A DNA stretch of 42,005 bases from the NCBI RefSeq assembly GCF_006345805.1, contig NW_021835195.1, positions 1-42,005 of the forward strand, in the 5' to 3' direction. The notes beneath the pieces are model-generated. The model was not told the DNA's origin, did no database searches, and saw only the letters and a program-made list of their open reading frames with translations. This DNA comes from Octopus sinensis (Eukaryota). Positions 7,506-37,080 of the stretch are shown here, one piece after another. The number at the start of each line of letters is the position of its first letter. Position 1 is the first letter of the stretch. A program made the translations under genes and the position numbers.

Positions 7506-8619
<1,114 letters not shown>

Positions 8620-8905
8620 AACTGTAATATCTGCAGTAAATTACACTAAGTCAGACCTTTTCCTTTTGAACGGCAGTTTTTAACAAAATTTCTAGTTAAC
8701 TAAACACTTTAAAACTTCATATACTGGTAGAATGTATCAAAATATAACATTTTTTTCTCTTGGCTTTCTTGAGAAAATTGTAATTTGCTTGTTTAACGTA
8801 GTTTAATTTTTCAAATTTTAACCAATCCTATGCCCTCTATTGGGAACGGCAGTTTTTTCTAGCAGTGTCATATGAAATTGTCACCCATAATTATGGCTCT
8901 AGTAT

Positions 8906-9528: not shown

Positions 9529-10036
9529 TCTATATATATAAAACTGTAGTTGTGTGAGTGTCTGTCCCCTTCGATTTAGATTCCTAACTACTCCCACATT
9601 TTGCGGTGCAGTTTAACCAAATTTGGGTATCTTATAGTCGTGATTCATATCGAGCCCGTCTGAGTATTAGCGCGCGTCTACGATGAGTCTACGATTTTAA
9701 AAATAATTTAACATAATTTTTTATTCCATTTTAATGCATAATTTTTCGTGTCAATGGCGGCGGAGTTGGCGTCCATGGTCACACCTGCACCTGTTTGCTT
9801 CTCCCCCTTCTTCTCCCTCGTGAAGCTGTGGGGAAGGGAGTGTACGGAAATCAACGTCGTAAAGCGTTGTCAAGGAGACCAGCGTTCTTTTAGAACAACG
9901 ACTTCATGGCTTGAAGACACCAATACAGAAATGGCTAAGAAAGCCCGAATTGGCATCTATAAGGGAAGTAACTCTCTAAAAATGCTTATATAGTTATTTC
10001 CTTACAAACCCGAGCAACGCCGGGCGATACTGCTAG
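9529..10036 (+). mobile_element. Non-autonomous Helitron, copy B, with different internal cargo
   Basis: A|TCTATATAT ... CCCGAGCAACGCCGGGCGATACTGCTAG|T; ends shared with copies A and C. Confidence 0.8.
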
Positions 10037-10269
10037 TATTGAATAAGACTTTGCGAGTCAGCTTTACATAATTTCTTGGGTATTGGTTAGAAAACAACCG
10101 ACGGGTTTCTCACCTTAACCTTAAAAAGAAATAGACGAAGAACGACACTAGAGGTTTAAAGAGGAGATCGTAAGAGTAGCAAAAAAAACTGAATATAAGT
10201 AGTCAGCATATACTTTTGTATTTTTTGCCATTATTCGTGGTTTTTTCATTATAATTCACATTTCGTAAA

Positions 10270-10278
10270 CGTAATTAT
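10270..10278 (+). repeat. 9-bp target-site duplication (left), CGTAATTAT
   Basis: Identical to 16476-16484 and directly abuts the GG terminus. Confidence 0.9.
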
Positions 10279-11029
10279 GGTACTTGTCTATTGTCGTGGT
10301 CCCGGTTTTGCACACGCGAATTCGCGCGCGCGCGCGTCAGACGTAGGTACTCGATACTCGAGATCCTACGAGGTGACTTGCGCATGCGCAGTGCGCGATT
10401 CGCGCATGCGCGTTAAACCCCCCCCCCCCCCGGAAAAAAAAAGGATTTTTTTAAAGATACCTTTCTGCTTTTTAAGACAAAAAGGTGTTGGATTTAACTA
10501 AAAATATATATATGTGTGGTGGTGTGTGTGTGTGTGTATATATAACATATTCAATTTTACATAAAAAAATTACATAGTCGCTTTCCTCGCGGATTTACAG
10601 ATAAATGAATTAATTACTATTTTACAGAATAAATTAATTAATTAATTATATAAATTAAATAATTCTTGAAAATTAATTATTATTAATACTCGAGATCTTA
10701 CGAGGTGACTTGCGCATGCGCAGTGCGCGATTCGCGCATGCGAGTTAACCCCCCCCCCCCCCGGAAAAAGAAAAAGGATTTTTTTAAAGATACCTTTGTT
10801 CGCTTTCCTCGCGGATTTACAGATAAATGAATTAATTACTATTTTACAGAATAAAATTAATGAATTAATTATATTAATTAAATAATTCTTGAAAATTAAT
10901 TATTATTAATAATATTTTTGAACAAGTAAAAAGTAATTACTTTTTTTTACAGAAACGCGAACGGGGAATTTTTCAGTTTAAAGTTTATAAATAAATACAT
11001 TTCATGTGTAATGTAAAATAGTAGTCAAT

Positions 11030-13198
11030 TAATTAAATACCTTCTTTTTATGGGGTATTATTCTTGTTCAAACTCGTCACATATTTGTAACTTTTCGATG
11101 TAAACCTTTCAATGTAAGTCTTAAAAAGTTGCGGCAGCTTAGCAGAAATGTCACGTTATAATTCTACCATGCAATGGTTTCAATACACGCGGGAGATCAT
11201 ACCCCTTCAAACTTTATATCATTCTGAAACATCTTTCAGAATATTCATCACACGACCGTTTTCATTTTGTCCAAATATTTTTTTCACAGAAATTCATCAG
11301 AATTGTGGCGATTTTATGACAGTGTAGCAAATTAGTAATCAACTAATTAAATACCTTCTTTTTCTGGGGTATTATTCTTGTTCAAACTCGTCACATATTT
11401 GTAACTTTTCGATGTAAACCTTTCAATGTAAGTCTTAAAAAGTTGCGGCAGCTTAGCAGAAACGTCACGTTATAATTTCTAACTATGCAATGGTTTCAAT
11501 ACACGCGGGAGATCATACCCCTTCAAACTTTATATCATTCTGAAACATCTTTCAGAATATTCATCACACGACCGTTTTCATTTTGTCCAAATATTTTTTT
11601 CCACAGAAATTCATCAGAATTGTGACGATTTTATGACAGTGTAGCAATTAGTAATCAACTAATTAAATACCTTCTTTTTATGGGGTATTATTCTTGTTCA
11701 AACTCGTCACATATTTGTAACTTTTCGATGTAAACCTTTCAATGTAAGTCTTAAAAAGTTGCGGCAGCTTAGCAGAAATGTCACGTTATAATTTCTAACT
11801 ATGCAATGGTTTCAATACACGCGGGAGATCATACCCCTTCAAACTTTATATCATTCTGAAACATCTTTCAGAATATTCATCACACGACCGTTTTCATTTT
11901 GTCCAAATATTTTTTTTCACAGAAATCATCAATCAGAATTGTGGCGATTTTATGACAGTGTAGCAAATTAGTAATCAACTAATTAAATACCTTCTTTTTC
12001 TGGGGTATTATTCTTGTTCAAACTCGTCACATATTTGTAACTTTTCGATGTAAACCTTTCAATGTAAGTCTTAAAAAGTTGCGGCAGCTTAGCAGAAATG
12101 TCACGTTATAATTTCTACCATGCAATGGTTTCAATACACGCGGGAGATCATACCCCTTCAAACTTTATATCATTCTGAAACATCTTTCAGAATATTCATC
12201 ACACGACCGTTTTCATTTTGTCCAAATATTTTTTTTCACAGAAATTCATCAGAATTGTGGCGATTTTATGACAGTGTAGCAAATTAGTAATCAACTAATT
12301 AAATACCTTCTTTTTCTGGGGTATTATTCTTGTTCAAACTCGTCACATATTTGTAACTTTTCGATGTAAACCTTTCAATGTAAGTCTTAAAAAGTTGCGG
12401 CAGCTTAGCAGAAATGTCACGTTATAATTTCTACCATGCAATGGTTTCAATACACGCGGGAGATCATACCCCTTCAAACTTTATATCATTCTGAAACATC
12501 TTTCAGAATATTCATCACACGACCGTTTTCATTTTGTCCAAATATTTTTTTCCACAGAAATTCATCAGAATTGTGGCGATTTTATGACAGTGTAGCAAAT
12601 TAGTAATCAACTAATTAAATACCTTCTTTTTCTGGGGTATTATTCTTGTTCAAACTCGTCACATATTTGTAACTTTTCGATGTAACCTTTCAATGTAAGT
12701 CTTAAAAAGTTGCGGCAGCTTAGCAGAATGTCACGTTATAATTTCTACCATGCAATGGTTTCAATACACGCGGGAGATCATACCCCTTCAAACTTTATAT
12801 CATCTGAAACATCTTTCAGAATATTCATCACACGACCGTTTTCATTTTGTTCCAAATATTTTTTTCCACAGAAATTCATCAGAATTGTGCCGATTTTATG
12901 ACAGTGTAGCAAATTAGTAATCAACTAATTAAATACCTTCTTTTTATGGGGTATTATTCTTGTTCAAACTCGTCACATATTTGTAACTTTTCGATGTAAA
13001 CCTTTCAATGTAAGTCTTAAAAAGTTGCGGCAGCTTAGCAGAAATGTCACGTTATAATTTCTAACTATGCAATGGTTTCAATACACGCGGGAGATCATAC
13101 CCCTTCAAACTTTATATCATTCTGAAACATCTTTCAGAATATTCATCACACGACCGTTTTCATTTTGTCCAAATATTTTTTTCCACAGAAATTCATCA
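11030..13198 (-). repeat. Tandem array in the left arm: ~316-bp unit, 6 full copies and 1 partial
   Basis: Marker TACCTTC at 11038, 11352, 11668, 11988, 12304, 12620, 12934; units nearly identical. Confidence 0.95.
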
Positions 13199-13846
13199 AT
13201 GCTGTTCCTTCTGCTGTCTTCTCTCTCCTTCTCCCTTATTTACTTCAGGCAATCTCCATCTATCGCAAAAAAGGGATTTTGAAAATCTTTGTCATGATTT
13301 TAATTCCGAGGAGTATCTTTTAACATTTTTTTATTTTCGAATATCTCATTCTATATGTGGCCTTTTTATTTTTCTCAAGTTAATAAGTGCCAGTAATGAG
13401 AGGAACATATCACAATTTTCAGTTTCCTTTACATGTTCACATAATAAATAATATTATGTCATTTTCTGTTAGGAAAGGCATAATTAATTTCAGTTAATGT
13501 TTGTCTAATTACCACAGTATTATGTAGATAACAGTTTGTTTATAAGGTTTTTATTGCCTACTTCAGAAAGCACATGACAAATATACTGAATCGGACAAGA
13601 ATCTAATAAGACTCAACATCATGACAGTCAAATCCTTATTCATGTATTTTCGTTAACTTGGGTTTCAGCCCAAAACAATCTTTCATAGTAGGACTACAAA
13701 TGTTTTTGAAAGAATATATTTATCATCAGAATATATATACTTTTCTCACACTACAATTAAGATATATTTATTTTAAATCGTTCATTTTTCTCCCCCCCCC
13801 ACAACAAAATTAGTTTGAAAGAGGGACAGAGAAAGTTCTAAAATCT

Positions 13847-13856
13847 AACCAATCAG
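13847..13856 (+). promoter_or_regulatory. CCAAT box upstream of the transposase
   Basis: AACCAATCAG about 100 bp before ATG 13951. Confidence 0.35.
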
Positions 13857-13950
13857 AGCTAACTGAATGATAGTCAGCTAACTGATACTGAAAATAACTT
13901 TATTTTCAGTTTATCTTCATCAGTTGAACTGTGAGTTAAATTAAGAAAAA

Positions 13951-14829
13951 ATGTTGTATGAGATAGAAAGCATCGTAAAAGACTTTGACAGTATCTATTC
14001 ATTCCTAAAGGACAAAATGTTGAGTTCCTCAACTCCAATTGCTCAAAATGCCATAGAGAGATGACTCTTATAAACACAACCAGGAAAAATTTTTCGCTGC
14101 CCAACTCACAAAGGGGAAAAAGAGTCGATTAGAAAGAAATCGTATCTCGAAAATAGCAGATTGAAACTGCACGATTTCATTCATGTTATATATTGTTGGG
14201 GCAGTAACCTAACAATAACAGGAGCAATAGCAATGACTGGATTGTCAAAATCTAGCGTTATTCAATGGTATCAATACATGCGAGATATCTGTAGCAATAA
14301 TCTAATCAACAATCCATACCAAATTGGTGGTGTCGGACACGTTGTTGAAGTAGATGAAAGTCTGATGTGTAAGAGAAAATACAATAGAGGGAGAACGCCA
14401 CAAGAGAGATGGGTTTTTGGAGGTTACGACAGAGAAGACAAAAAAGGCTTCATACTGTTCGTAGCTGACCGTTCCTCGGAAACTCTGCTACCCATCATCA
14501 AAAAATTTATTAGACCGGGCACAACAATTCATTCGGATTGCTGGCCCGCCTATAATGGTATTGCAGAAATGGATGTGACACCAAAATACATCCATTTCAC
14601 AGTAAACCATTCCCAGAATTTTGTGGATCCGCTAACAGGTGTACTCACAAATTCTGTGGAATGTTACTGGAAGAATGCCAAAAGAAAATTTAAAACGATG
14701 ATGGGGGTACATTCCACCATGGTGGACTCGTACCTTGATGAGTTTCTGTGGAAGGAACAATATGGGCAAACTGCACACGATTGCTTGATGAATATTCTGA
14801 AACATCTTTCCGAATGGTATAGAGTTTGA
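13951..14829 (+). CDS. Merlin/ISXO2-like DDE transposase; N-terminus broken by two compensating frameshifts (~14040, ~14085)
   Basis: VVEVDES, RWVFGG, TIHSDCW..Y, HFTVNHSQNFVD, TNSVECYW, YLDEFLW. A reconstructed N-terminal CSKC...FRCPTH zinc ribbon spans frames. The frame is open from ~14074 to TGA 14829. Confidence 0.9.
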
Positions 14830-14852
14830 AGGGGTATGATCGCCCGAATGTA

Positions 14853-15730
14853 TTTTTGGACAAAATGAAAACGGTCGTGTGATGAATATTCTGAAAGATG
14901 TTTCAGAATGATATAAAGTTTGAAGGGGTATGATCTCCCGCGTGTATTGAAACCATTGCATAGTTAGAAATTATAACGTGACGTTTCTGCTAAGCTGCCG
15001 CAACTTTTTAAGACTTACATTGAAAGGTTTACATCGAAAAGTTACAAATATGTGACGAGTTTGAACAAGAATAATACCCCAGAAAAAGAAGGTATTTAAT
15101 TAGTTGATTACTAATTTGCTACACTGTCATAAAATCGCCACAATTCTGATGAATTTCTGTGAAAAAAAATATTTGGACAAAATGAAAACGGTCGTGTGAT
15201 GAATATTCTGAAAGATGTTTCAGAATGATAAAAGTTTGAAGGGGTATGATCTCCCGTTGTATTGAAACCATTGCATGGTAGAAATTATAACGTGACATTT
15301 CTGCTAAGCTGCCGCAACTTTTTAAGACTTACATTGAAAGGTTTACATCGAAAAGTTACAATATGTGACGAGTTTGAACAAGAATAATACCCCATAAAAA
15401 GAAGGTATTTAATTAGTTGATTACTAATTTGCTACACTGTCATAAAATCGCCACAATTCTGATGAATTTCTGTGGAAAAAAATATTTGGACAAAATGAAA
15501 ACGGTCGGTGATGAATATTCTGAAAGATGTTTCAGAATGATATAAAGTTTGAAGGGGTATGATCTCCCGCGTGTATTGAAACCATTGCATGGTAGAAATT
15601 ATAACGTGACATTTCTGCTAAGCTGCCGCAACTTTTTAAGACTTACATTGAAAGGTTTACATCGAAAAGTTACAAATATGTGACGAGTTTGAACAAGAAT
15701 AATACCCCAGAAAAAGAAGGTATTTATTAA
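14853..15730 (+). repeat. Tandem array in the right arm, inverted relative to 11030-13198, ~3 copies
   Basis: GGTA of the marker GAAGGTA at 15091, 15404 and 15719. Confidence 0.95.
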
Positions 15731-16209
15731 TTGACTACTATTTTACATTACACATGAAATGTATTTATTTATAAACTTTAAACTGAAAATTCCCCGTTCG
15801 CGTTTCTGTAAAAAAAAAGTAATTACTTTTAACTTTGTTCAAAAAATATATTAATAATAATAATTTTCAAGAATTATTTAATTAATATAATTAATTCATT
15901 AATTTTATTCTGTAAAATAGTAATTAATTCATTTATCTGTAAATCCGCGAGGAAAGCGACCAAGGTATCTTTAAAAAAATCCTTTTTTTTTTCCGGGGGG
16001 GGGGTTAACTCGCATGCGCGAATCGCGCACTGCGCATGCGCAAGTCACCTCGTAAGATCTCGAGTATTAATAATAATTAATTTTCAAGAATTATTTAATT
16101 TATATAATTAATTCATTAATTTTATTCTGTAAAATAGTAATTAATTCATTTATCTGTAAATCCGCGAGGAAAGCGACTATGTAATTTTTTTGTGTAAAAT
16201 TGAATATGT

Positions 16210-16250
<41 letters not shown>

Positions 16251-16475
16251 TTTTAGTTAAATCCAACACCTTTTTGTCTTAAAAAGCAGAAAGGTATCTT
16301 TAAAAAAATCCTTTTTTTTTTCCGGGGGGGGGGGGTTAACGCGCATGCGCGAATCGCGCACTGCGCATGCGCAAGTCACCTCGTAGGATCTCGAGTATCG
16401 AGTACCTACGTCTGACGCGCGCGCGCGCGCGAATTCGCGTGTGCAAAACCGGGACCACGACAATAGACAAGTACC

Positions 16476-16484
16476 CGTAATTAT
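16476..16484 (+). repeat. 9-bp target-site duplication (right), CGTAATTAT
   Basis: Identical to 10270-10278. Confidence 0.9.
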
Positions 16485-16852
16485 AGCAATAAAAACTATT
16501 AAAAATTTACCACTTCAATTTTAGCATCCGACAAATGCGTAGTAATAGGATGGATACAATATTTAGAAGTTAGTTCGTTTCGTTGAAGTTCCGTGTCGAT
16601 TTTTCTAAAGTGCCTTTAAATTATATTTCCCGCCAGATCGATCCTTTATGTAATTAACGTTAATTCATATTAAACACTAATTTATTTATCATAACAGGTA
16701 AGATACAATACATGTTTTGTTTGTGGTAAAAGCCAATGACCCTGGTTTATTGGAAACTCTAGACAATTGTGAAAGTTTTGAATGTTGCTAATCTGATTTC
16801 GATATTAATTCCATCTCCGTTAAACAATGCCAAGAAAATCTAATCTTAATTT

Positions 16853-18568
16853 GGTAAAATTACAGATTAACACCCGCACGATTTTCACTAAAAAAAAAAA
16901 AAAAAAACTCGGATTTTTTGCGTGGAATCAAATACCCTGACCTCCTAATATGCTGCAAATCCCATATTTTGGTCCGGAATTTCTCCGGAAGGGGGGGGGG
17001 TGACACCCCCCCCCGGAATTTTCACAAGGAAAAAAAATCAGATTTTTTGCGTGGAATCAAGTACCCTGACCTCCTAATATGCTGCAAATCCCATATTTTG
17101 GTCCGGAAGGGGGGGGGTGTTACCCCCCTCCCGGAATTTTCACAAGGAAAAAAAGAATCAGATTTTTATACATGCATAGACACATCCTTAATTAAACTAT
17201 TGACCGCCTTAAAACGGGTTTTAACAGAGAAATATTACTATAATGGATAATATAAGCATATAACTACTTATACACACATACAATAAATACAGACACACAC
17301 ACACACATTAGTCACACATATAGTCACATATACACACGTGTGTATGATTGGTGTATGTGATCGCGGTGGTGGTCATTTGTGCAGCTAAAAGCATGACAGT
17401 GCCATTTATATAATTAATTCATTAATTTTATTCTGTAAAATAGTAATTAATTCATTTATCTGTAAAATAGTACAAATATTCTGCAAATCCGCGGGGGAAT
17501 CGCTATGTTGTTACTCAGCCAGCTAGAAATAGCAGCCAGATTTTCCTCCAATAACACATGCACGCTATTGGAAAGACATCCTCCCAAAGTTGTTGTATGA
17601 ATGCATGCGTATAGTAATTGTGTCTGTGTGTCCGACAGAAGGTGCAGATAAAGGTGCATGCGAATACAACAGAAATACAGGTAAAAATTCAGAGAAACTG
17701 CTACTTACCTCTTGCTGTCAAAAAAATGGATTAATTCTCAAGGGTTCCGCAAGAAGTTGCAAAACTGCTAAAATCGGCAGTAATTTTTAATTCTCCTGTG
17801 CAGATATGTGTGCATAAGACTATTAAATTATTGCACAGGGGTTCCTCGAGCCATTGGAATGTTTGAATTACGCTGTGTGGTTTCAGTTTCTAATTTTTGC
17901 TTCTGATCTCTCTTTGCCCCCCCCCCTCTCTATCTCAAACTAATTTTTGTATAGGTGGAGGTGTGGTGGGGAGACAGATGAATGATGTCTCATTCTCTGA
18001 TATATATATATATAATGAACCATTTCTTAAACATACACGATATAGTCTATAAATTTGGGATGTTTTTGAAAGATAATATATTTTATCATCAGAATATATA
18101 TACTTTCTCACACTACAATTAAGATATATTTATTTTAAATCGTTCATCTTTTCCCGCCCACAACAAAAATTGGCGCGAAAATTTTTTTAAATATCAGCGA
18201 AATGAACAACTGAGATAGAGAGGGGGGGGGCAAAGAGAGATCAGAAGCAAAAATTAGAAACTGAAACCACACAGCGTAATTCAAACATTCCAATGGCTCG
18301 AGGAACCCCTGTGCAATAATTTAATAGTCTTATGCACACATATCTGCACAGGAGAATTAAAAATTACTGCCGATTTTAGCAGTTTTGCAACTTGCGGAAC
18401 CCTGGTTTAGCATAACAGTATGTTTTGCTGAGAATTAATCCATTTTTTTGACAGCAAGAGGTAAGTAGCAGTTTGTCTGAATGTTATCCATTACATTATC
18501 CATTATAGTAATATTTGTCTGTTGAAACCCGTTTTAAGGCGGTCAATAGTTTAATTAAAGATGTGTCT

Positions 18569-18971: not shown

Positions 18972-19589
18972 TATATATATAATATATATATATATACATG
19001 TATAGATACATCTTTAATTAAACTATTGACCGCCTTAAAACAGGTTTCAACAGACAAATATTACTATAATGGATAATATAAGCATATAAATACTTATACA
19101 CACATTAGTCACACATATAGCCACTATACACACACTGCAAGAATATATTTATTTATAAAGTTTAAACAGAACATAGAATGAAATGTATTTATTTATAAAC
19201 TTTAAACTGAACTTCAATTGTTTTATAAACCTAACAGCGAACCTCACGTAAATACACGAAGTTGACGACTTTCACTTCTGACAGCTAAAAGCATGACAGT
19301 GTGCCAAATCTTCTTTTGCGCAATAATATATCAATAATTTGTTCACACTTCAATTTACTATTTTCTAGAAATGTTTCTTTTCTAAATTATTGATATATTA
19401 TTTTTTTTTTTCCTTGTGAAAATTCCGGGGGAGGGGGGTCACCCCCCCCCTTTCCGGACCAATTCCGGACCAAAATATTGGATTTGCAGCATATTAGGAG
19501 GTCAGGGTACTTGATTCCACGCAAAAAATCCGAGTTTTTTTTTTTTTTTCTTAGTGAAAATCGTGCGGGTGTTAATCTGTAATTTTACC
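16853..19589. mobile_element. Non-autonomous GG...CC TIR element, probably Merlin-related
   Basis: ~185-bp TIRs (GGTAAAATTACAGATTAAC... / ...GTTAATCTGTAATTTTACC). Internal blocks are homologous to the Merlin element (17410-17500, 18060-18180, 19175-19210). No TSD found. Confidence 0.7.
18575..18996. repeat. Compound (TA)n microsatellite
   Basis: Direct inspection; flanked by 80-bp inverted repeats. Confidence 0.95.
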
Positions 19590-19790
19590 GGCACCACCGC
19601 TGGAACTCATATCTTCAGAGATGTAAACAAAGTCACGTGTTTACATATACCGAAGGATCGCCACATACCCTAACCCTAGCCCTAACTTTAAACCTAACCC
19701 TAACCCCCCATATATAAAAAAAACACTTTTTTGAAATGTATCTGGTACTTCCGGAAGTACACCGGTACTTATACCGTAAGATCGCCTTCT
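19590..19790. repeat. Unclassified repeat with a degenerate CCCTAA run
   Basis: ACCCTAACCCTAGCCCTAAC...CCTAACCCTAACCCC at ~19657-19700. Confidence 0.35.
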
Positions 19791-20774: not shown

Positions 20775-21823
20775 ATGAATCCGCCGGAGATGACAAGAGA
20801 AAGAGAAAAATTATCAGACCAATGTGATATCTGTAAAAAGACTTTTCTAATACAGCAAATCTCACTGTTCACAAGTGTATTGATCCAAGTGGAAAGCAAT
20901 ATCGCTGTGATATCTGTGGTAAATCATTCTCTAAAAAATATAACCTTACTCATCACAAATACATTCATACAGGAGAGAAACCATATCAATGTGGTATTTG
21001 TGGTAAATCATTCTCTAATAGGAGTAGCCTTACTTGTCACAAATACATTCATACAGGAGAGAAACCGTATCACTGTGACATCTGTGGTAAATCATTCTCC
21101 CAAAAAAGTCACCTTAAACCTCACAAATACATTCATACAGGTGAGAAATCATATCAATGCGATATCTGTGATAAATCCTTTTCACTAAGGAATGATTTAG
21201 CTAAACACAAACTTTCACATACTCATGAAAAGCCGTATCACTGCGAAATTTGTGGTAAATCATACTCTCAAAGAAGTCACCTTGGTTCTCACAAATACAT
21301 TCACACAGGAGAGAAACCATATCACTGTGATATTTGTGGTAAATCATTCACTCAAAAATGTAACCTTGATTCTCACAAACACATTCATACAGGAGAGAAA
21401 CCACATTACTGTGATATTTGTGGTAAATCATTCTCTCAAAAAGGTAGCCTGACTTCTCACAAATCCATTCATACAGGAGAGAAACCATATCACTGTGATA
21501 TATGTAATAAGTCCTTTTATATAAGAAGTTCTTTAACTAAACACAAACTTATTCATGCTGATGAGAAACCATATCAATGTAGCATTTGTGGTAAATCATT
21601 CACTCAAAAATGTAACCTTACTCATCACAAACACATTCATACAGGTGAGAAACCATATCAGTGTGATATCTGTGGTAAATCATTCACTGGAAAAAGTAAC
21701 CTTAGTCATCACAAATACATTCATACAGGAGAGAAACGATATCACTGTGATATCTGTGAATCATTCTTTCATAAAAGTAACTTTAATAGACACAAATACA
21801 TTCATACAGGAGAGAAATCATAG
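20775..21823 (+). pseudogene. C2H2 zinc-finger gene 2: 12 fingers, 1-nt deletion in finger 1 (pseudogene or consensus error)
   Basis: MNPPEMTREREKLSDQCDICKKT, then ACTTTTCTAAT (4 T) vs ACTTTTTCTAAT (5 T) in gene 1. The shifted frame 20846-21823 is open for 325 codons of finger repeats. Confidence 0.85.
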
Positions 21824-22620
21824 CACTGTGATATCTGCAGTAAATCATTCTAAGTCTATTCATAAAGGAGACAAACTATGTCACTGTGATATCTGTGGTA
21901 AATCATTCTCTTGGGAATGTGCTATATGTACTCATAAATGTATTTATACAAGAGAGAAGCCCTATCACTGTGATATCTGTGGTAAATCATTCTCTGTGGA
22001 ACAATATTTAACTAATTACAAATTCATTCAGACAGGAGAGAAAGCATAGCACTGTAATATCTGCAGTAAATCATTCTGCGTAAGAAAATATTTTCGTCAC
22101 AAATCCACTTACATTGGGCAGATATTGTATCATTGTGATCATCATCATCATCGTTTAGCGTCCGCTTTCCATGCTAGCATGGGTTGGACGGTTCAACTGA
22201 GGTCTGGGAAGCCAGAAGGCTGCACCAGGCCCAGTCTGATCTGGCAGTGTTTCTACAGTTGGATGCCCTTCTTAACGCCAACCACTCCGTGATTGTAGTG
22301 AGAGCTTTTTACGTGCCACCGGCAAAGGTGCCAGACGAGGCTGGCAAACGGCCACGATCGGATGGTGCTTTCTACGTGCCACCAGCACGGAGGCCAGTTA
22401 GGGTGGCGCTGGCTCTGGCAACATTCGGATGGTTCTCTTATGTGCCACCGGCACTGGTATCACAACTTCAAATTCCATTGATGTTGATCGATTATGATTT
22501 TGATATCTGTAGTAAATCATTCTCTTAGGATTATGTTGTTTAACTAATTTTAAATGCATTCATACAGGAGAGAAGGCATATTGCTGTGTTATCTGTGCAA
22601 AATCATTCTCTTAATGTAAT
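21824..22620 (+). pseudogene. Decayed fingers 3' of ZNF gene 2, interrupted by an RTE-tail insertion
   Basis: [33 protein letters not shown]..., with stops and indels. Confidence 0.7.
22137..22500 (-). mobile_element. RTE-type 3' end / derived SINE
   Basis: Reverse complement of the (GAT)n-tailed element. Confidence 0.75.
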
Positions 22621-24879: not shown

Positions 24880-25200
24880 TGGCCATTTGCCAGCCTGCTG
24901 TGGCCTCTTGTGCCAGTGGCACGTAAAAAGCACCATCCGATCGTGGACGTTTGCCAGCCTCATCTGGCACGTAAAAAGCACCAACCGATTGTGGCTGCTG
25001 CCAGCCTCCCCTGGTACCTGTGCCGGTGGCATGTAAAGAGCATGCACTACACTCACGGAGTGGTTGGCGTTAGGAAGGGCATCCTGCCGTAGAGACACTG
25101 CCAGATCAGACTGGGCCTGATGCAGCCTTCTGGCTTCCCAGACCCCAGTCGAACCATCCAACCCATGCTAGCATGGAAAACAGACACTAAACGATGATGA
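24880..25200 (+). mobile_element. RTE-type 3' end / derived SINE
   Basis: Same 3' UTR and (GAT)n tail; another partial copy at 25470-25640. Confidence 0.75.
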
Positions 25201-28739: not shown

Positions 28740-30000
28740 AGATCCTGGGATCCCTGAGCGTGTCCAGCAGAGGATAACTGATCACGGCTGGGAACTGGAG
28801 TGTAATACATTTGTGTCAAAATAATATATCCACAAGAAAACAGAGCAAATTAATATAATCAATATTGTTTGAATAAAAAACACACATCGTAATTAGTGAG
28901 TTGATGCAAATGAAGAAAATGTGAAAAATGAATTTATTTTGTAAAAAGTAATACATTTGCTGTAATTTATTCACCAGGACATCTGTTTTATCATTGATAT
29001 TGTTATTGATCAATATGAATAAGTATATGTTTAGTTAAGGTAGATTATTGAGAGAATGATTTAGCACAGATTACACAGTCATCAGAATCTTCTCCTGTAT
29101 GAATATGTTTGTGTTTAGTTTATTATTTCTCTCTATGAAAGAATGACTTGTCACAGATGTCACAGTGATATGGTTTCTCTCCTGTATGAATGTATTTGTG
29201 ATGAGTTCAATATTGTTCCACAGAGAATGATTTACCACTGATATCACAGTAATAGGGTTTCTCTCCCGTATGAATACATTTATGAGTATATACAGCAATA
29301 CTATATTTGAGTATATATAATGAAAATCGAAATCGATCAACATCAATGGAGATTGTAGCTGTGATACCAGTGCCGAAGGCACGTAAGAGAACCATCCGAA
29401 CGTGGCTGTTGCCAGCGCCGCCCCGACTGGCCTCCGTGCTGGTTGCACGTAAAAAGCACCATCCAATCATGGCCGTTTGCCAGCCTCGCTTGGCACCTGT
29501 GTCGGTGGCACATAAAAAGCACCATCCGATCGTGGCCGTTTGCCAGCCTCACTTGGCACCTGTGTCGGTGGCACGTAAAAAGCACCATCCAATCATGGCC
29601 GTTTGCCAGCCTCGCCTGGCCTCCGTGCTGGTGGCACGTAAAAAGCACCATCCAATCGTGGCCGTTTGCCAGCCTCGTCTGGCACCTGTGTCGGTGGCAC
29701 GTAAAAAGCACCCACTACACTCACGGAGTGGTTGGCGTTAGGAAGGGCATCCAGCCTTAGAAACATTGCCAGATCAGACTGGGCCTGGTGCAGCCTTCTG
29801 GCTTCACAGACCCCAGTTGAACCGTCCAACCCGTGCATGGAAAGCAGATGCTAAACAATGATGATGATGATAGCTCCTTCTTGAGAGAATGATTTGCTGC
29901 AGATATCCCAGCGGTATAGTTTCTCTCTGGTATGAGTTAACTTATGATTAGTTAAGTATTTTCATTCACAGAATGATTTACTGCAGATATCACAGTGCAT
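28740..30000 (-). pseudogene. Decayed distal fingers and 3' trailer of ZNF gene 3, displaced by insertions
   Basis: HTGEKPYYCDISGKSFSVEQY etc. The trailer 28740-29050 is homologous to 22620-22900. Confidence 0.65.
29323..29872 (+). mobile_element. RTE-type 3' end with an expanded 63-bp tandem unit
   Basis: AAAAAGCACC markers at 29451, 29514, 29577, 29640, 29703; (GAT)n tail. Confidence 0.8.
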
Positions 30001-31676: not shown

Positions 31677-32533
<857 letters not shown>

Positions 32534-36462: not shown

Positions 36463-37080
36463 GCAGTTGAGGGAACCTGTGGAAGAGGTAGACCCAGGAA
36501 AACCTGGGACGAGATGGTGAAGCACGACCTTCGAACTTTAGGTCTCACCAAGGAAATGACTAGAGACCGAGACCTATGGAAGTATGCTGTGCGTGAGAAG
36601 ACCAGTGAGAACAGTCAAAATCAAACCAAATCAACATCAGTGGAAATTGCAGCTGTGGTTAAGCAAACCATCCGATCGTTTGTCCGTTGCCAGCCTCGCC
36701 TGACCCCTGTGCCGTTGGCACGTAAAAGCACCATCCGCTCGTGTCCGTTGCCAGCCTTGCCTGGCCCCCGTGCCGGTAGCACGTAAAAGCACCATCCGTT
36801 CGTGTCCATTGCCAGCCTCACCTGGCCCCTGTGCCGGTGGCACATAAAAACACCATCTGTTTGTGGCCGTTTGCCAGCTCTGTCTGGCACCTGTGCAGGT
36901 GGCACGTAAAAGGCACGCACTACACTCACGGAGTGGTTGGCGTTAGGAAGGGCATCCAGCCGTAGAAACGCTGCCAAATTTGACTGGGCCTGATGAAGCC
37001 TTCCGGCTTCACAGACCCCAGTTAAACCGTCCAACCCATGCTAGCATGGAAAACGGACGCTAAATGATGATGATGATGAT
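36463..37080 (+). mobile_element. RTE LINE 3' end: ORF C-terminus, repeat-containing 3' UTR and (GAT)n tail
   Basis: GRGRPRKTWDEMVKHDLRTLGL...DRDLWK is an RTE C-terminal signature. Confidence 0.8.

Follow-up and report, generated by a model that had tools for sequence, protein, structure and literature searches.

Merlin elements are eukaryotic DDE transposons of the IS1595/IS1016 type (Feschotte 2004, summarised in PMC8101967). They have GG termini, a target-site duplication (TSD) that is typically 9 bp long (8-9 bp as the criterion) and reported terminal inverted repeats (TIRs) of 24-462 bp, and some families carry internal tandem repeats (PMC8101967). In the Galileo element of Drosophila mojavensis, TIRs extend in two ways, through internal tandem repeats that differ between arms and through inverted recruitment of sequence lying just inside the TIR, such as the spacer that follows the transposase gene (PMC3573991). 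The window analyzed here, 42,005 nucleotides of Octopus sinensis DNA (NCBI RefSeq assembly GCF_006345805.1, contig NW_021835195.1, positions 1 to 42,005 of the forward strand), contains a complete Merlin DNA transposon of 6,197 bp at 10279-16475. It is a foldback-type member of the Merlin superfamily, and the genuine end of its transposase gene is the innermost, truncated repeat of its own right arm.

The arms of this element are very long TIRs composed largely of tandem repeats, with a copy number that is unequal between arms and between copies, which is the structure of foldback elements. The inverted repeat extends far beyond the tandem arrays, each arm consisting of an outer domain and an array. 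Positions 10272-11910 are collinear with 16483-14852 and 97.2% identical over 1651 bp. The left arm measures 2,920 bp (10279-13198) and the right arm 1,739 bp (14737-16475), and the 1,537 bp of unique sequence between them comprises a 752-bp 5' region and codons 1-262. These lengths exceed the described Merlin range (24-462 bp) 4- to 6-fold, although that range is descriptive rather than a strict criterion. Tandem Repeats Finder (TRF) detects a 316-bp period in both arms, counting 6.9 units in 11015-13198 and 2.8 in 14855-15744, and the units are 96-97% alike. A preliminary description of the locus had counted about seven antisense copies upstream of the gene, in agreement with the left array. 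Counts of 6.9 and 2.8 in the window copy compare with ~1.9 and ~1.9 in a second copy, termed L001 and described below.

Several lines of evidence identify the head of this repeat unit as a copy of the gene end. Positions 14737-14829 translate to DEFLWKEQYGQTAHDCLMNILKHLSEWYRV*, and the units, read in the sense orientation of the right arm, give DEFLWKKIFGQNENGRVMNILKDVSE*YKV*. The two peptides are identical at 17/30 residues and have the stop in common, colinearly and without gaps, as first described. At the nucleotide level, gene end (14737-14854) and unit positions 1-118 align ungapped with 96/118 identities (81%). The shuffle test proposed in the preliminary description gives 46 +/- 2 identities with a maximum of 55 (n=2000 shuffled units, any offset), and outside the arrays nothing on either strand of the 42-kb window exceeds 58/118 to the gene end. 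A profile hidden Markov model (HMM) built from 45 homologues sets the unit peptide at the family C-terminus, positions 266-295, with E ~1e-4 in a tiny search space. The onset of homology is sharp at GAT, the 60 nt upstream matching at only 15/60, and the earlier observation of some 25 nt of homology past the stop also holds (22/25), with an abrupt end at 14854.

The boundaries of the arms place the gene end within the repeat. The left array terminates at 13198, one base beyond the antisense GAT of DEFLW at which the preliminary description had set its end, and the inner arm boundaries mirror each other there (13198 versus 14736/14737). Because the left arm stops at unit position 1 and this stop is mirrored at 14736/14737, the right arm begins inside the open reading frame (ORF) and not at 14855. 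At the right-arm junction, 14854/14855, unit position 118 is joined to position 24 across a TATT microhomology. The unit as a whole is the 3' end of the gene plus ~200-220 bp downstream, and it has no similarity to the GGTACT...GGTCCC terminus, so an origin as a transposon 3' end with an old terminus is rejected. The earlier proposal that the long TIR grew by capture and amplification of a Merlin 3' end therefore stands in part: a gene-end segment was incorporated and amplified, but it was not a transposon terminus. The parts of the element are as follows.

10270..10278, no strand: left TSD CGTAATTAT; the identical 9-mer adjoins both termini
16476..16484, no strand: right TSD CGTAATTAT; same 9-mer as on the left
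10279..16475, plus strand: whole Merlin element, 6,197 bp; termini GGTACTTGTCTATTGTCGTGGTCCC inverted at both ends; the paralogue aligns exactly to these limits
10279..11014, minus strand: outer (flanking) domain of the left TIR, ~736 bp, with internal duplications; collinear with 15745-16475 and inverted
11015..13198, minus strand: left subterminal array, 6.9 x 316 bp, antisense to the gene (TRF); inner end is unit position 1 (GAT)
13199..13950, plus strand: unique 5' region from left arm to ATG, 752 bp, presumed 5' untranslated region and promoter; no inverted partner found; common to the L001 copy
13951..14829, plus strand: transposase coding region, 292 codons and stop (Pfam, frames, L001 alignment, conserved columns)
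14737..14854, plus strand: end of the gene, comprising its final 30 codons, the stop and 25 nt beyond, equal to unit positions 1-118; innermost partial repeat of the right arm
14754..14786, plus strand: 33-nt diverged core, EQYGQTAHDCL in the gene against KIFGQNENGRV in the units; 13/22 of the differences
14794..14815, plus strand: 22-nt palindrome ATTCTGAAA-CATC-TTTC(C/A)GAAT; exact reverse complement (loop GATG) in all window units
14855..15744, plus strand: right subterminal array, 2.8 units, sense, beginning at unit position 24 (TRF; junction read from the sequence)
15745..16475, plus strand: outer domain of the right TIR, 731 bp (arm alignment)

The differences between gene end and unit are clustered, 13/22 of them falling in nt 18-49 (scan p = 0.014). 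Downstream of this core, the palindrome at 14794-14815 forms a 9-bp stem with a 4-nt loop within the NILKHLSEW codons. In the window units (14888, 15205, 15517 and the left-arm equivalents) its loop is GATG, as against CATC in the gene and in all L001 units, and this inverted loop is fixed across both arms of the window copy. Since the change from CATC to GATG is the exact reverse complement of the palindrome loop, a single inversion or template-switch event would explain both the H>D and the L>V replacements.

The unit contains a further short resemblance to the gene. Unit positions 102-131 (for example 12436-12465, plus strand) are identical at 25/30 positions to a gene-internal stretch, 14260-14289, encoding IQWYQYMRDI of the conserved helix-turn-helix (HTH) motif. 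The segment occurs once per unit (11169, 11485, 11801, 12120, 12750 and 13067, and as the reverse complement at 14932 and 15561), lies in the orientation opposite to the C-terminal remnant and overlaps the 3' flank of the gene. It gives a blastn E of 4e-4, a score reached by 2/1000 dinucleotide shuffles, and a weak HMM match (E 0.19). It may have been inserted as inverted "filler" during an old repair or template switch. A six-frame HMM search of the unit, the outer TIR domain and the 5' region returns only the C-terminal remnant and this weak antisense HTH-motif match.

By the domain, GG-end and TSD criteria of PMC8101967, the element belongs to Merlin. Its ORF at 14161-14829 matches Pfam DDE_Tnp_IS1595 (PF12762) with an E value of 1.1e-19 and 71 bits against a cut-off of 27, confirming the initial identification of the gene as a Merlin transposase. 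DDE_Tnp_IS1595 is the Merlin/IS1016-type domain, and 107 homologues carry it as well. Both termini of the element begin GGTACTTGTC, which supplies the 5'-GG of Merlin, and the TSD CGTAATTAT at 10270-10278 and 16476-16484 has one of the two accepted lengths (8 or 9 bp). The terminus form GGTACT..N14..GG(T/A)CCC is also present in two Merlins on public contigs, L003 and L005, and the GGTACT start in a third, L004.

The transposase is a protein of ~292 amino acids with an N-terminal CxxC...CPxH zinc finger, encoded in a single ORF. Its closest relatives are octopus entries named "ISXO2-like transposase", the best being O. sinensis LOC115210589 at 93% identity. Candidate DDE residues are the D of VDES (14350), the D of HSDCW (14530) and the E of VECYW (14656). 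VDES and VECYW fall in invariant or near-invariant columns (D65, E66, E167), and the second Asp, in HSDCW, is absent from the conserved columns reported and is placed by sequence only. The frame of the window gene is broken by three 1-nt homopolymer deletions (T ~14039, A 14072-74, A 14085-89) that span ~50 nt near the zinc finger and yield stops at 14062 and 14071; it also lacks an AAG, an in-frame 3-nt deletion, in the alignment to L001 (14017-14090). The three homopolymer deletions could reflect true pseudogenization or long-read error. The L001 gene is damaged by a 2-nt deletion directly after DEFLWK, and thus both examined copies are broken.

The second copy, L001, lies on O. sinensis chromosome CM016862.1 and contains the gene LOC115210589. 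Its match to the window element covers exactly 10279-16475, at 95-97%, and stops at those limits; the flanks of L001 are unrelated and it has its own 9-bp TSD, GAATTTCTA, with 4 extra nt at the right end. The element has therefore moved as a unit, being found at two loci with unrelated flanks and separate TSDs, the only two copies seen. L001 has the same left boundary and the same 118-to-24 junction, with ~1.9 units per arm. Identical junctions between different flanks and TSDs indicate that the architecture belongs to a mobile family and is not a local accident or an assembly artefact, and the number of units differs both among copies and between arms. A protein search for more copies with the 55-residue antisense ORF of the unit gave no match, so the comparison rests on these two.

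When the gene and units of the window copy are set against those of L001, the 22 window differences fall into four classes: a) ~13-15 differences in the 33-nt core (nt 18-50), common to both copies, b) one old R/K difference, c) GAG>GAA, TGG>TGA and CATC>GATG, which are specific to the window units and present in every unit of both arms, and d) four bases private to the window gene. The L001 unit reads GATGAG...CATCTTTCAGAATGGTATAAAGTTTGA, which translates to DEFLWKKIFGQNENGRVMNILKHLSEWYKV* without an internal stop. It differs from the L001 gene only in the 33-nt core and at one other base, with 67/68 identical nt in the stretch that follows the core. In the left arm of L001, the innermost unit retains the gene-type AAGGAA. 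Unit variants are copy-specific, with GAA, GATG and TGA throughout both arms of the window copy and GAG, CATC and TGG throughout L001. Such uniformity across all units of both arms is evidence of concerted evolution.

The source of the coding remnant was sought by comparing the unit peptide with the C-termini of the 107 homologues and then of 256 Merlin transposases, a set that adds the best 150 representatives from a 1.84-billion-protein library. None of the 256 sampled transposases fits the unit better than the element's own gene: an ancestral-type unit matches its own gene at 20/30 residues and the others at no more than 15/30, and a unit-like core at the homologous position reaches at most 3/12. 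Gene and unit have in common the derived K6, Q11 and M18, the stop position and the 3' flank, which other octopus subfamilies lack. Similarity to outgroups is up to 20/30 for the gene and up to 15/30 for the unit. The core changes from gene to unit are to A or T in 9/13 cases and non-synonymous in 10/11 codons. Taken together, the nearness of its own gene, the shared derived states and the AT-biased core fit a paralogue of the gene end released from constraint. The preliminary description had suggested that the present ORF and the arms come from different subfamilies and had called for a search for the subfamily whose C-terminus best matches the unit; that search found none above the element's own gene, and the suggestion of a foreign donor subfamily is not supported by the sampled transposases.

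Overlap of TIR and ORF is not a general Merlin trait. Two fetched Merlin relatives have TIRs of 74 bp and 365 bp that end 244 bp and 2.2 kb short of the ORF, and the overlap, absent in L003 and L005, was rejected as a property of the superfamily. No usable TIRs were found around L002 and L004. L004 (O. vulgaris OX597841.1) contains an uninterrupted Merlin transposase frame at 8001-8861, 68% identical to the window transposase, within a 199-residue multi-exon gene model. A right terminus of the type GGTACTACTGG...GGTCCC is present there at 9953; gene-end-derived repeats and a left end were not found.

We regard it as probable, though well short of certain, that the element recruited its own 3' end into the TIR and that tandem amplification and concerted evolution followed, as in Galileo and Tetris. 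The kilobase TIRs would have been built from the element's own right end. In this scheme everything between codon D263 and the terminus became present at the left end as well, in inverted orientation, which would explain why the right TIR starts inside the ORF. Recruitment would have reached 93 nt into the ORF, with the recruited piece becoming the head of the tandem unit, and the innermost 316 bp (30 codons, stop and ~220 bp downstream) would then have been amplified in tandem. Copies outside the gene, free of coding constraint, may have decayed, giving the AT-biased 33-nt core and also, in the units of the window, the stop created by TGG>TGA. Homogenization of units within and between arms would be due to gene conversion and unequal exchange, which would also alter unit number and still trade sequence with the gene end. 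From the observed anatomy, homology, second copy, copy-number variation and mosaic pattern we infer the order of events and the mechanism of exchange; the first step may have been either an inverted or a tandem duplication. Long TIRs would be expected to attract recombination and conversion. The arrays most probably arose as a side effect of unstable TIRs and not as a device maintained by selection.

Several observations weigh against recruitment of the element's own gene end. The boundary of the tandem unit coincides with the inner TIR boundary, a coincidence that the scheme leaves unexplained, and the 118-to-24 junction requires an extra deletion. The comparison covers two copies only. The unit keeps the ancestral N14 of other octopus subfamilies where the gene has H, so the split between gene and unit is not recent. 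Divergence in the core (13/36 nt) is as large as that separating the gene from L002, another octopus subfamily with 57% protein identity; together with N14, this indicates that the core split is old and that the identity of the flank must be secondary, through conversion, crossover or constraint. Finally, ~40% divergence in the 33-nt core stands beside near-identity, whereas simple duplication and decay predicts an even spread, and the clustering needs an added assumption, be it later conversion of the flank, a crossover or constraint on the flank.

Some of these observations give weight to a foreign or recombinant origin, which we consider unlikely overall. In this alternative the arms derive from a different Merlin lineage whose remnant gene end became the unit, and the present ORF was recombined in later by a crossover between the core and nt 51, leaving nt 1-50 of the gene lineage and nt 51-118 of the arm lineage. 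The L001 mosaic, with its ~13-15 differences in nt 18-50 and one in the next 68 nt, has the expected form; core divergence at the level of L002, the ancestral N14, a unit CGT one step from the TGT of L002 and the intact reading frame of the L001 unit are also consistent with it, and Galileo provides documented chimeric copies and exchange between subfamilies (PMC3573991). However, a crossover predicts continuation as a full unit, and the sequence instead jumps from position 118 to 24. Nor does any of the 256 transposases have a unit-like C-terminus or core (at most 3/12), the derived K6, Q11, M18, stop position and 3' flank are common to gene and unit, and the AT-biased, largely non-synonymous core changes are those of an unconstrained copy. 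A foreign source predicts a Merlin lineage with an intact ORF ending KKIFGQNENGRV..., and an intact octopus Merlin transposase ending ...KKIFGQNENGRVMNILKHLSEWYKV, with synonymous divergence across the whole 3' end, would favor it.

A second alternative, which appears improbable, is that the 316-bp units are secondary transposase-binding sites (transposition enhancers) amplified for better recognition of the ends. Enhancer-type repeats are known from Galileo, from the inverted repeat/direct repeat (IR/DR) structure of Sleeping Beauty and from the subterminal repeats of Ac. THAP-domain sites lie within the TIR tandem repeats of Galileo (PMC3688188), and both octopus copies retain at least ~2 units per arm. 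The arrays, however, lie ~740 bp from the ends and are strongly asymmetric in copy number (6.9 versus 2.8). In addition, terminus and unit give no significant local alignment, and no k-mer of >=8 nt from the terminal 150 bp recurs on either strand of the unit, an indirect test of shared recognition sites.

The position of the arms also invites a regulatory interpretation, in which the antisense gene-end copies would exist because RNA from the arms, in hairpin or antisense form, turns down the element's own transposase, the dose being set by array length. As a selected device this is improbable. The geometry permits it: the 118-nt gene end is present in antisense ~7 times upstream of the gene, an inverted duplication of the Mu killer type, and the duplex of antisense unit and mRNA end is predicted at -136 kcal/mol (perfect duplex, -206; shuffles, -43 +/- 4). 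In maize, Mu killer silences its family through a read-through hairpin from an inverted partial duplication of the transposase gene (PMC3440606). Neither AATAAA nor ATTAAA was found from the stop codon to the end of the element, and the mRNA may therefore extend into sense units that pair perfectly; the diverged coding copy would then be unnecessary for any pairing. On the other hand, the 752-bp unique region parts the left arm from the ATG, and normal transcripts need not include that arm. The longest perfect matches to the coding end in the window copy are only 17-19 nt, selection for self-silencing is hard to justify on a transposon, and the two copies examined already carry broken genes. 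A hairpin would require read-through from outside the element, the left arm lying upstream of the unique region, as in Mu killer (PMC3440606).

A transcript crossing both arms would predictably fold into a hairpin of at least 1.6 kb. Cephalopods have ADAR activity, and hyper-editing by ADAR or targeting by PIWI-interacting RNAs (piRNAs) would be a more likely fate for such a hairpin in octopus than production of small interfering RNAs (siRNAs). A 2025 survey of 32 species including O. bimaculoides reported that molluscs have no dedicated endogenous siRNA (endo-siRNA) machinery or siRNA signatures, only microRNAs and piRNAs (PMC12479628), which argues against a device of this type. As with every effect at the RNA level, we infer a silencing or attenuation role purely from this arrangement. 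It is similarly improbable, though conceivable, that the overlap of TIR and ORF acts as a built-in "Mu killer" in every family member, with read-through or antisense RNA from the arms, complementary to the mRNA end and 3' untranslated region, feeding piRNA production or ADAR hyper-editing at a strength tuned by array length (2 to 7 units). If true, the element would limit itself by a design that has not been described in any transposon superfamily.

Chance similarity or an assembly artefact (a mis-joined palindrome or collapsed repeats) can be set aside as very improbable, since 96/118 identities face a shuffle maximum of 55 and GCA_006345805.1, treated as an independent assembly, shows this architecture with these junctions at a different locus, flanked by a separate TSD. 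An artefact is thereby effectively refuted for the architecture, though not for exact unit counts and single-base indels: the units differ in many places by the length of a homopolymer, a pattern typical of long-read error, and assembled array lengths can be wrong.

Parts of the element resemble other repeats. The outer TIR domain has duplications of its own (10354-10463 with 10686-10797, and 10577-10688 with 10800-10911) and contains a (GT)n/(AT)n tract and a C/G homopolymer. Some of its modules, together with 13700-13809 of the 5' region, recur outside the element (17404-17508, 19178-19211, 18060-18168) and in O. vulgaris L004, with 13700-13809 resembling the repeat at 18060-18168. Given these recurring modules, parts of the arms may be derived from other octopus repeats. 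A dispersed repeat (...GGATTTTTTGCGTGGAATCAA(A/G)TACCCTGACCTCCTAATATGCTGCAAATCC...) has several copies just to the right of the element, at 16918-17160 and 19400-19590 (minus strand), and this GGATTTTTTGCGTGGAATCAA-type repeat carries G/C homopolymers like those of the outer TIR domain. No known RNA family is present in 10000-16800 at gathering thresholds.

The element sits between arrays of 84-bp period that encode C2H2 zinc-finger repeats on both strands (7601-8618, 20899-22077, 29051-29285 and 31747-32445). Such 84-bp C2H2 arrays are typical of the expanded zinc-finger (ZNF) gene clusters of octopus. Another tandem repeat, of 48-63 bp and with GGTGGCACGTAAAAAGCACC...GCCAGCCTCGCCTGGC, occurs at 24917-25008, 29441-29712 and 36667-36912 and is probably part of another dispersed octopus repeat family.

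The novelty of this element lies in a long-TIR plan within Merlin and in a TIR that overlaps the transposase ORF, with a unit traceable to the gene end, while the route of TIR growth is known from Galileo, Tetris and Foldback (FB). The foldback or long-TIR habit is extended to Merlin, with arms of 1.7-2.9 kb against a published maximum of 462 bp. It also offers an unusually legible case of TIR growth, as a base-by-base correspondence links the unit to the end of the element's own transposase gene, the gene end is the first repeat and a second copy displays intermediate states. The family is a convenient natural system for the study of how a coding segment and its non-coding paralogues evolve in concert and of how satellite-like arrays are seeded inside transposons. 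If the arms are transcribed, it would provide a clean test of how a cephalopod cell handles a long perfect hairpin homologous to an mRNA. Its interest for transposon specialists is moderate, and the regulatory interpretation is an unproven possibility.

The octopus element resembles other Merlins in its DDE_Tnp_IS1595 transposase, 5'-GG ends, 9-bp TSD and single ORF. It differs in arms of ~1.7 and 2.9 kb rather than 24-462 bp and in a right TIR that overlaps the last 30 codons.

The closest parallel for its growth is Galileo, an autonomous, foldback-like member of the P superfamily in Drosophila. Galileo also has long, internally repetitive TIRs, with tandem repeats of ~210 bp whose number differs between arms and copies (PMC3573991), and it shows inverted recruitment of the region downstream of the transposase (F2) as well as evidence of exchange between copies (PMC3573991). 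In contrast, it belongs to another superfamily, its TIRs reach up to ~1.25 kb and the regions it recruited are spacer rather than coding sequence. The longest Galileo TIRs are found in non-autonomous copies, whereas in octopus they are on a gene-carrying copy, and secondary binding sites have been demonstrated in Galileo, whereas in the octopus units such sites would be putative. Tetris and FB have the same plan of a flanking domain (up to 866 bp in Tetris, ~736 bp in octopus) followed by variable tandem repeats (~220 bp versus 316 bp) (PMC4079207), with unequal arms and repeats that are potential seeds of satellite DNA (PMC4079207). However, Tetris and most FB copies are without a transposase, and their unit is traced to the flanking domain and not to the end of a transposase gene.

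Mu killer of maize is similar in that a portion of a transposase gene lies within an inverted duplication, which could give a hairpin RNA homologous to transposase mRNA (PMC3440606). Mu killer, however, is a separate rearranged locus comprising the 5' part of mudrA and TIR, transcribed from a flanking gene and acting through plant siRNA and RNA-directed DNA methylation (RdDM). In octopus the inverted copy lies inside every family element and covers the last 118 nt only, in a host clade reportedly without endo-siRNAs, and any function there would be conjectural.

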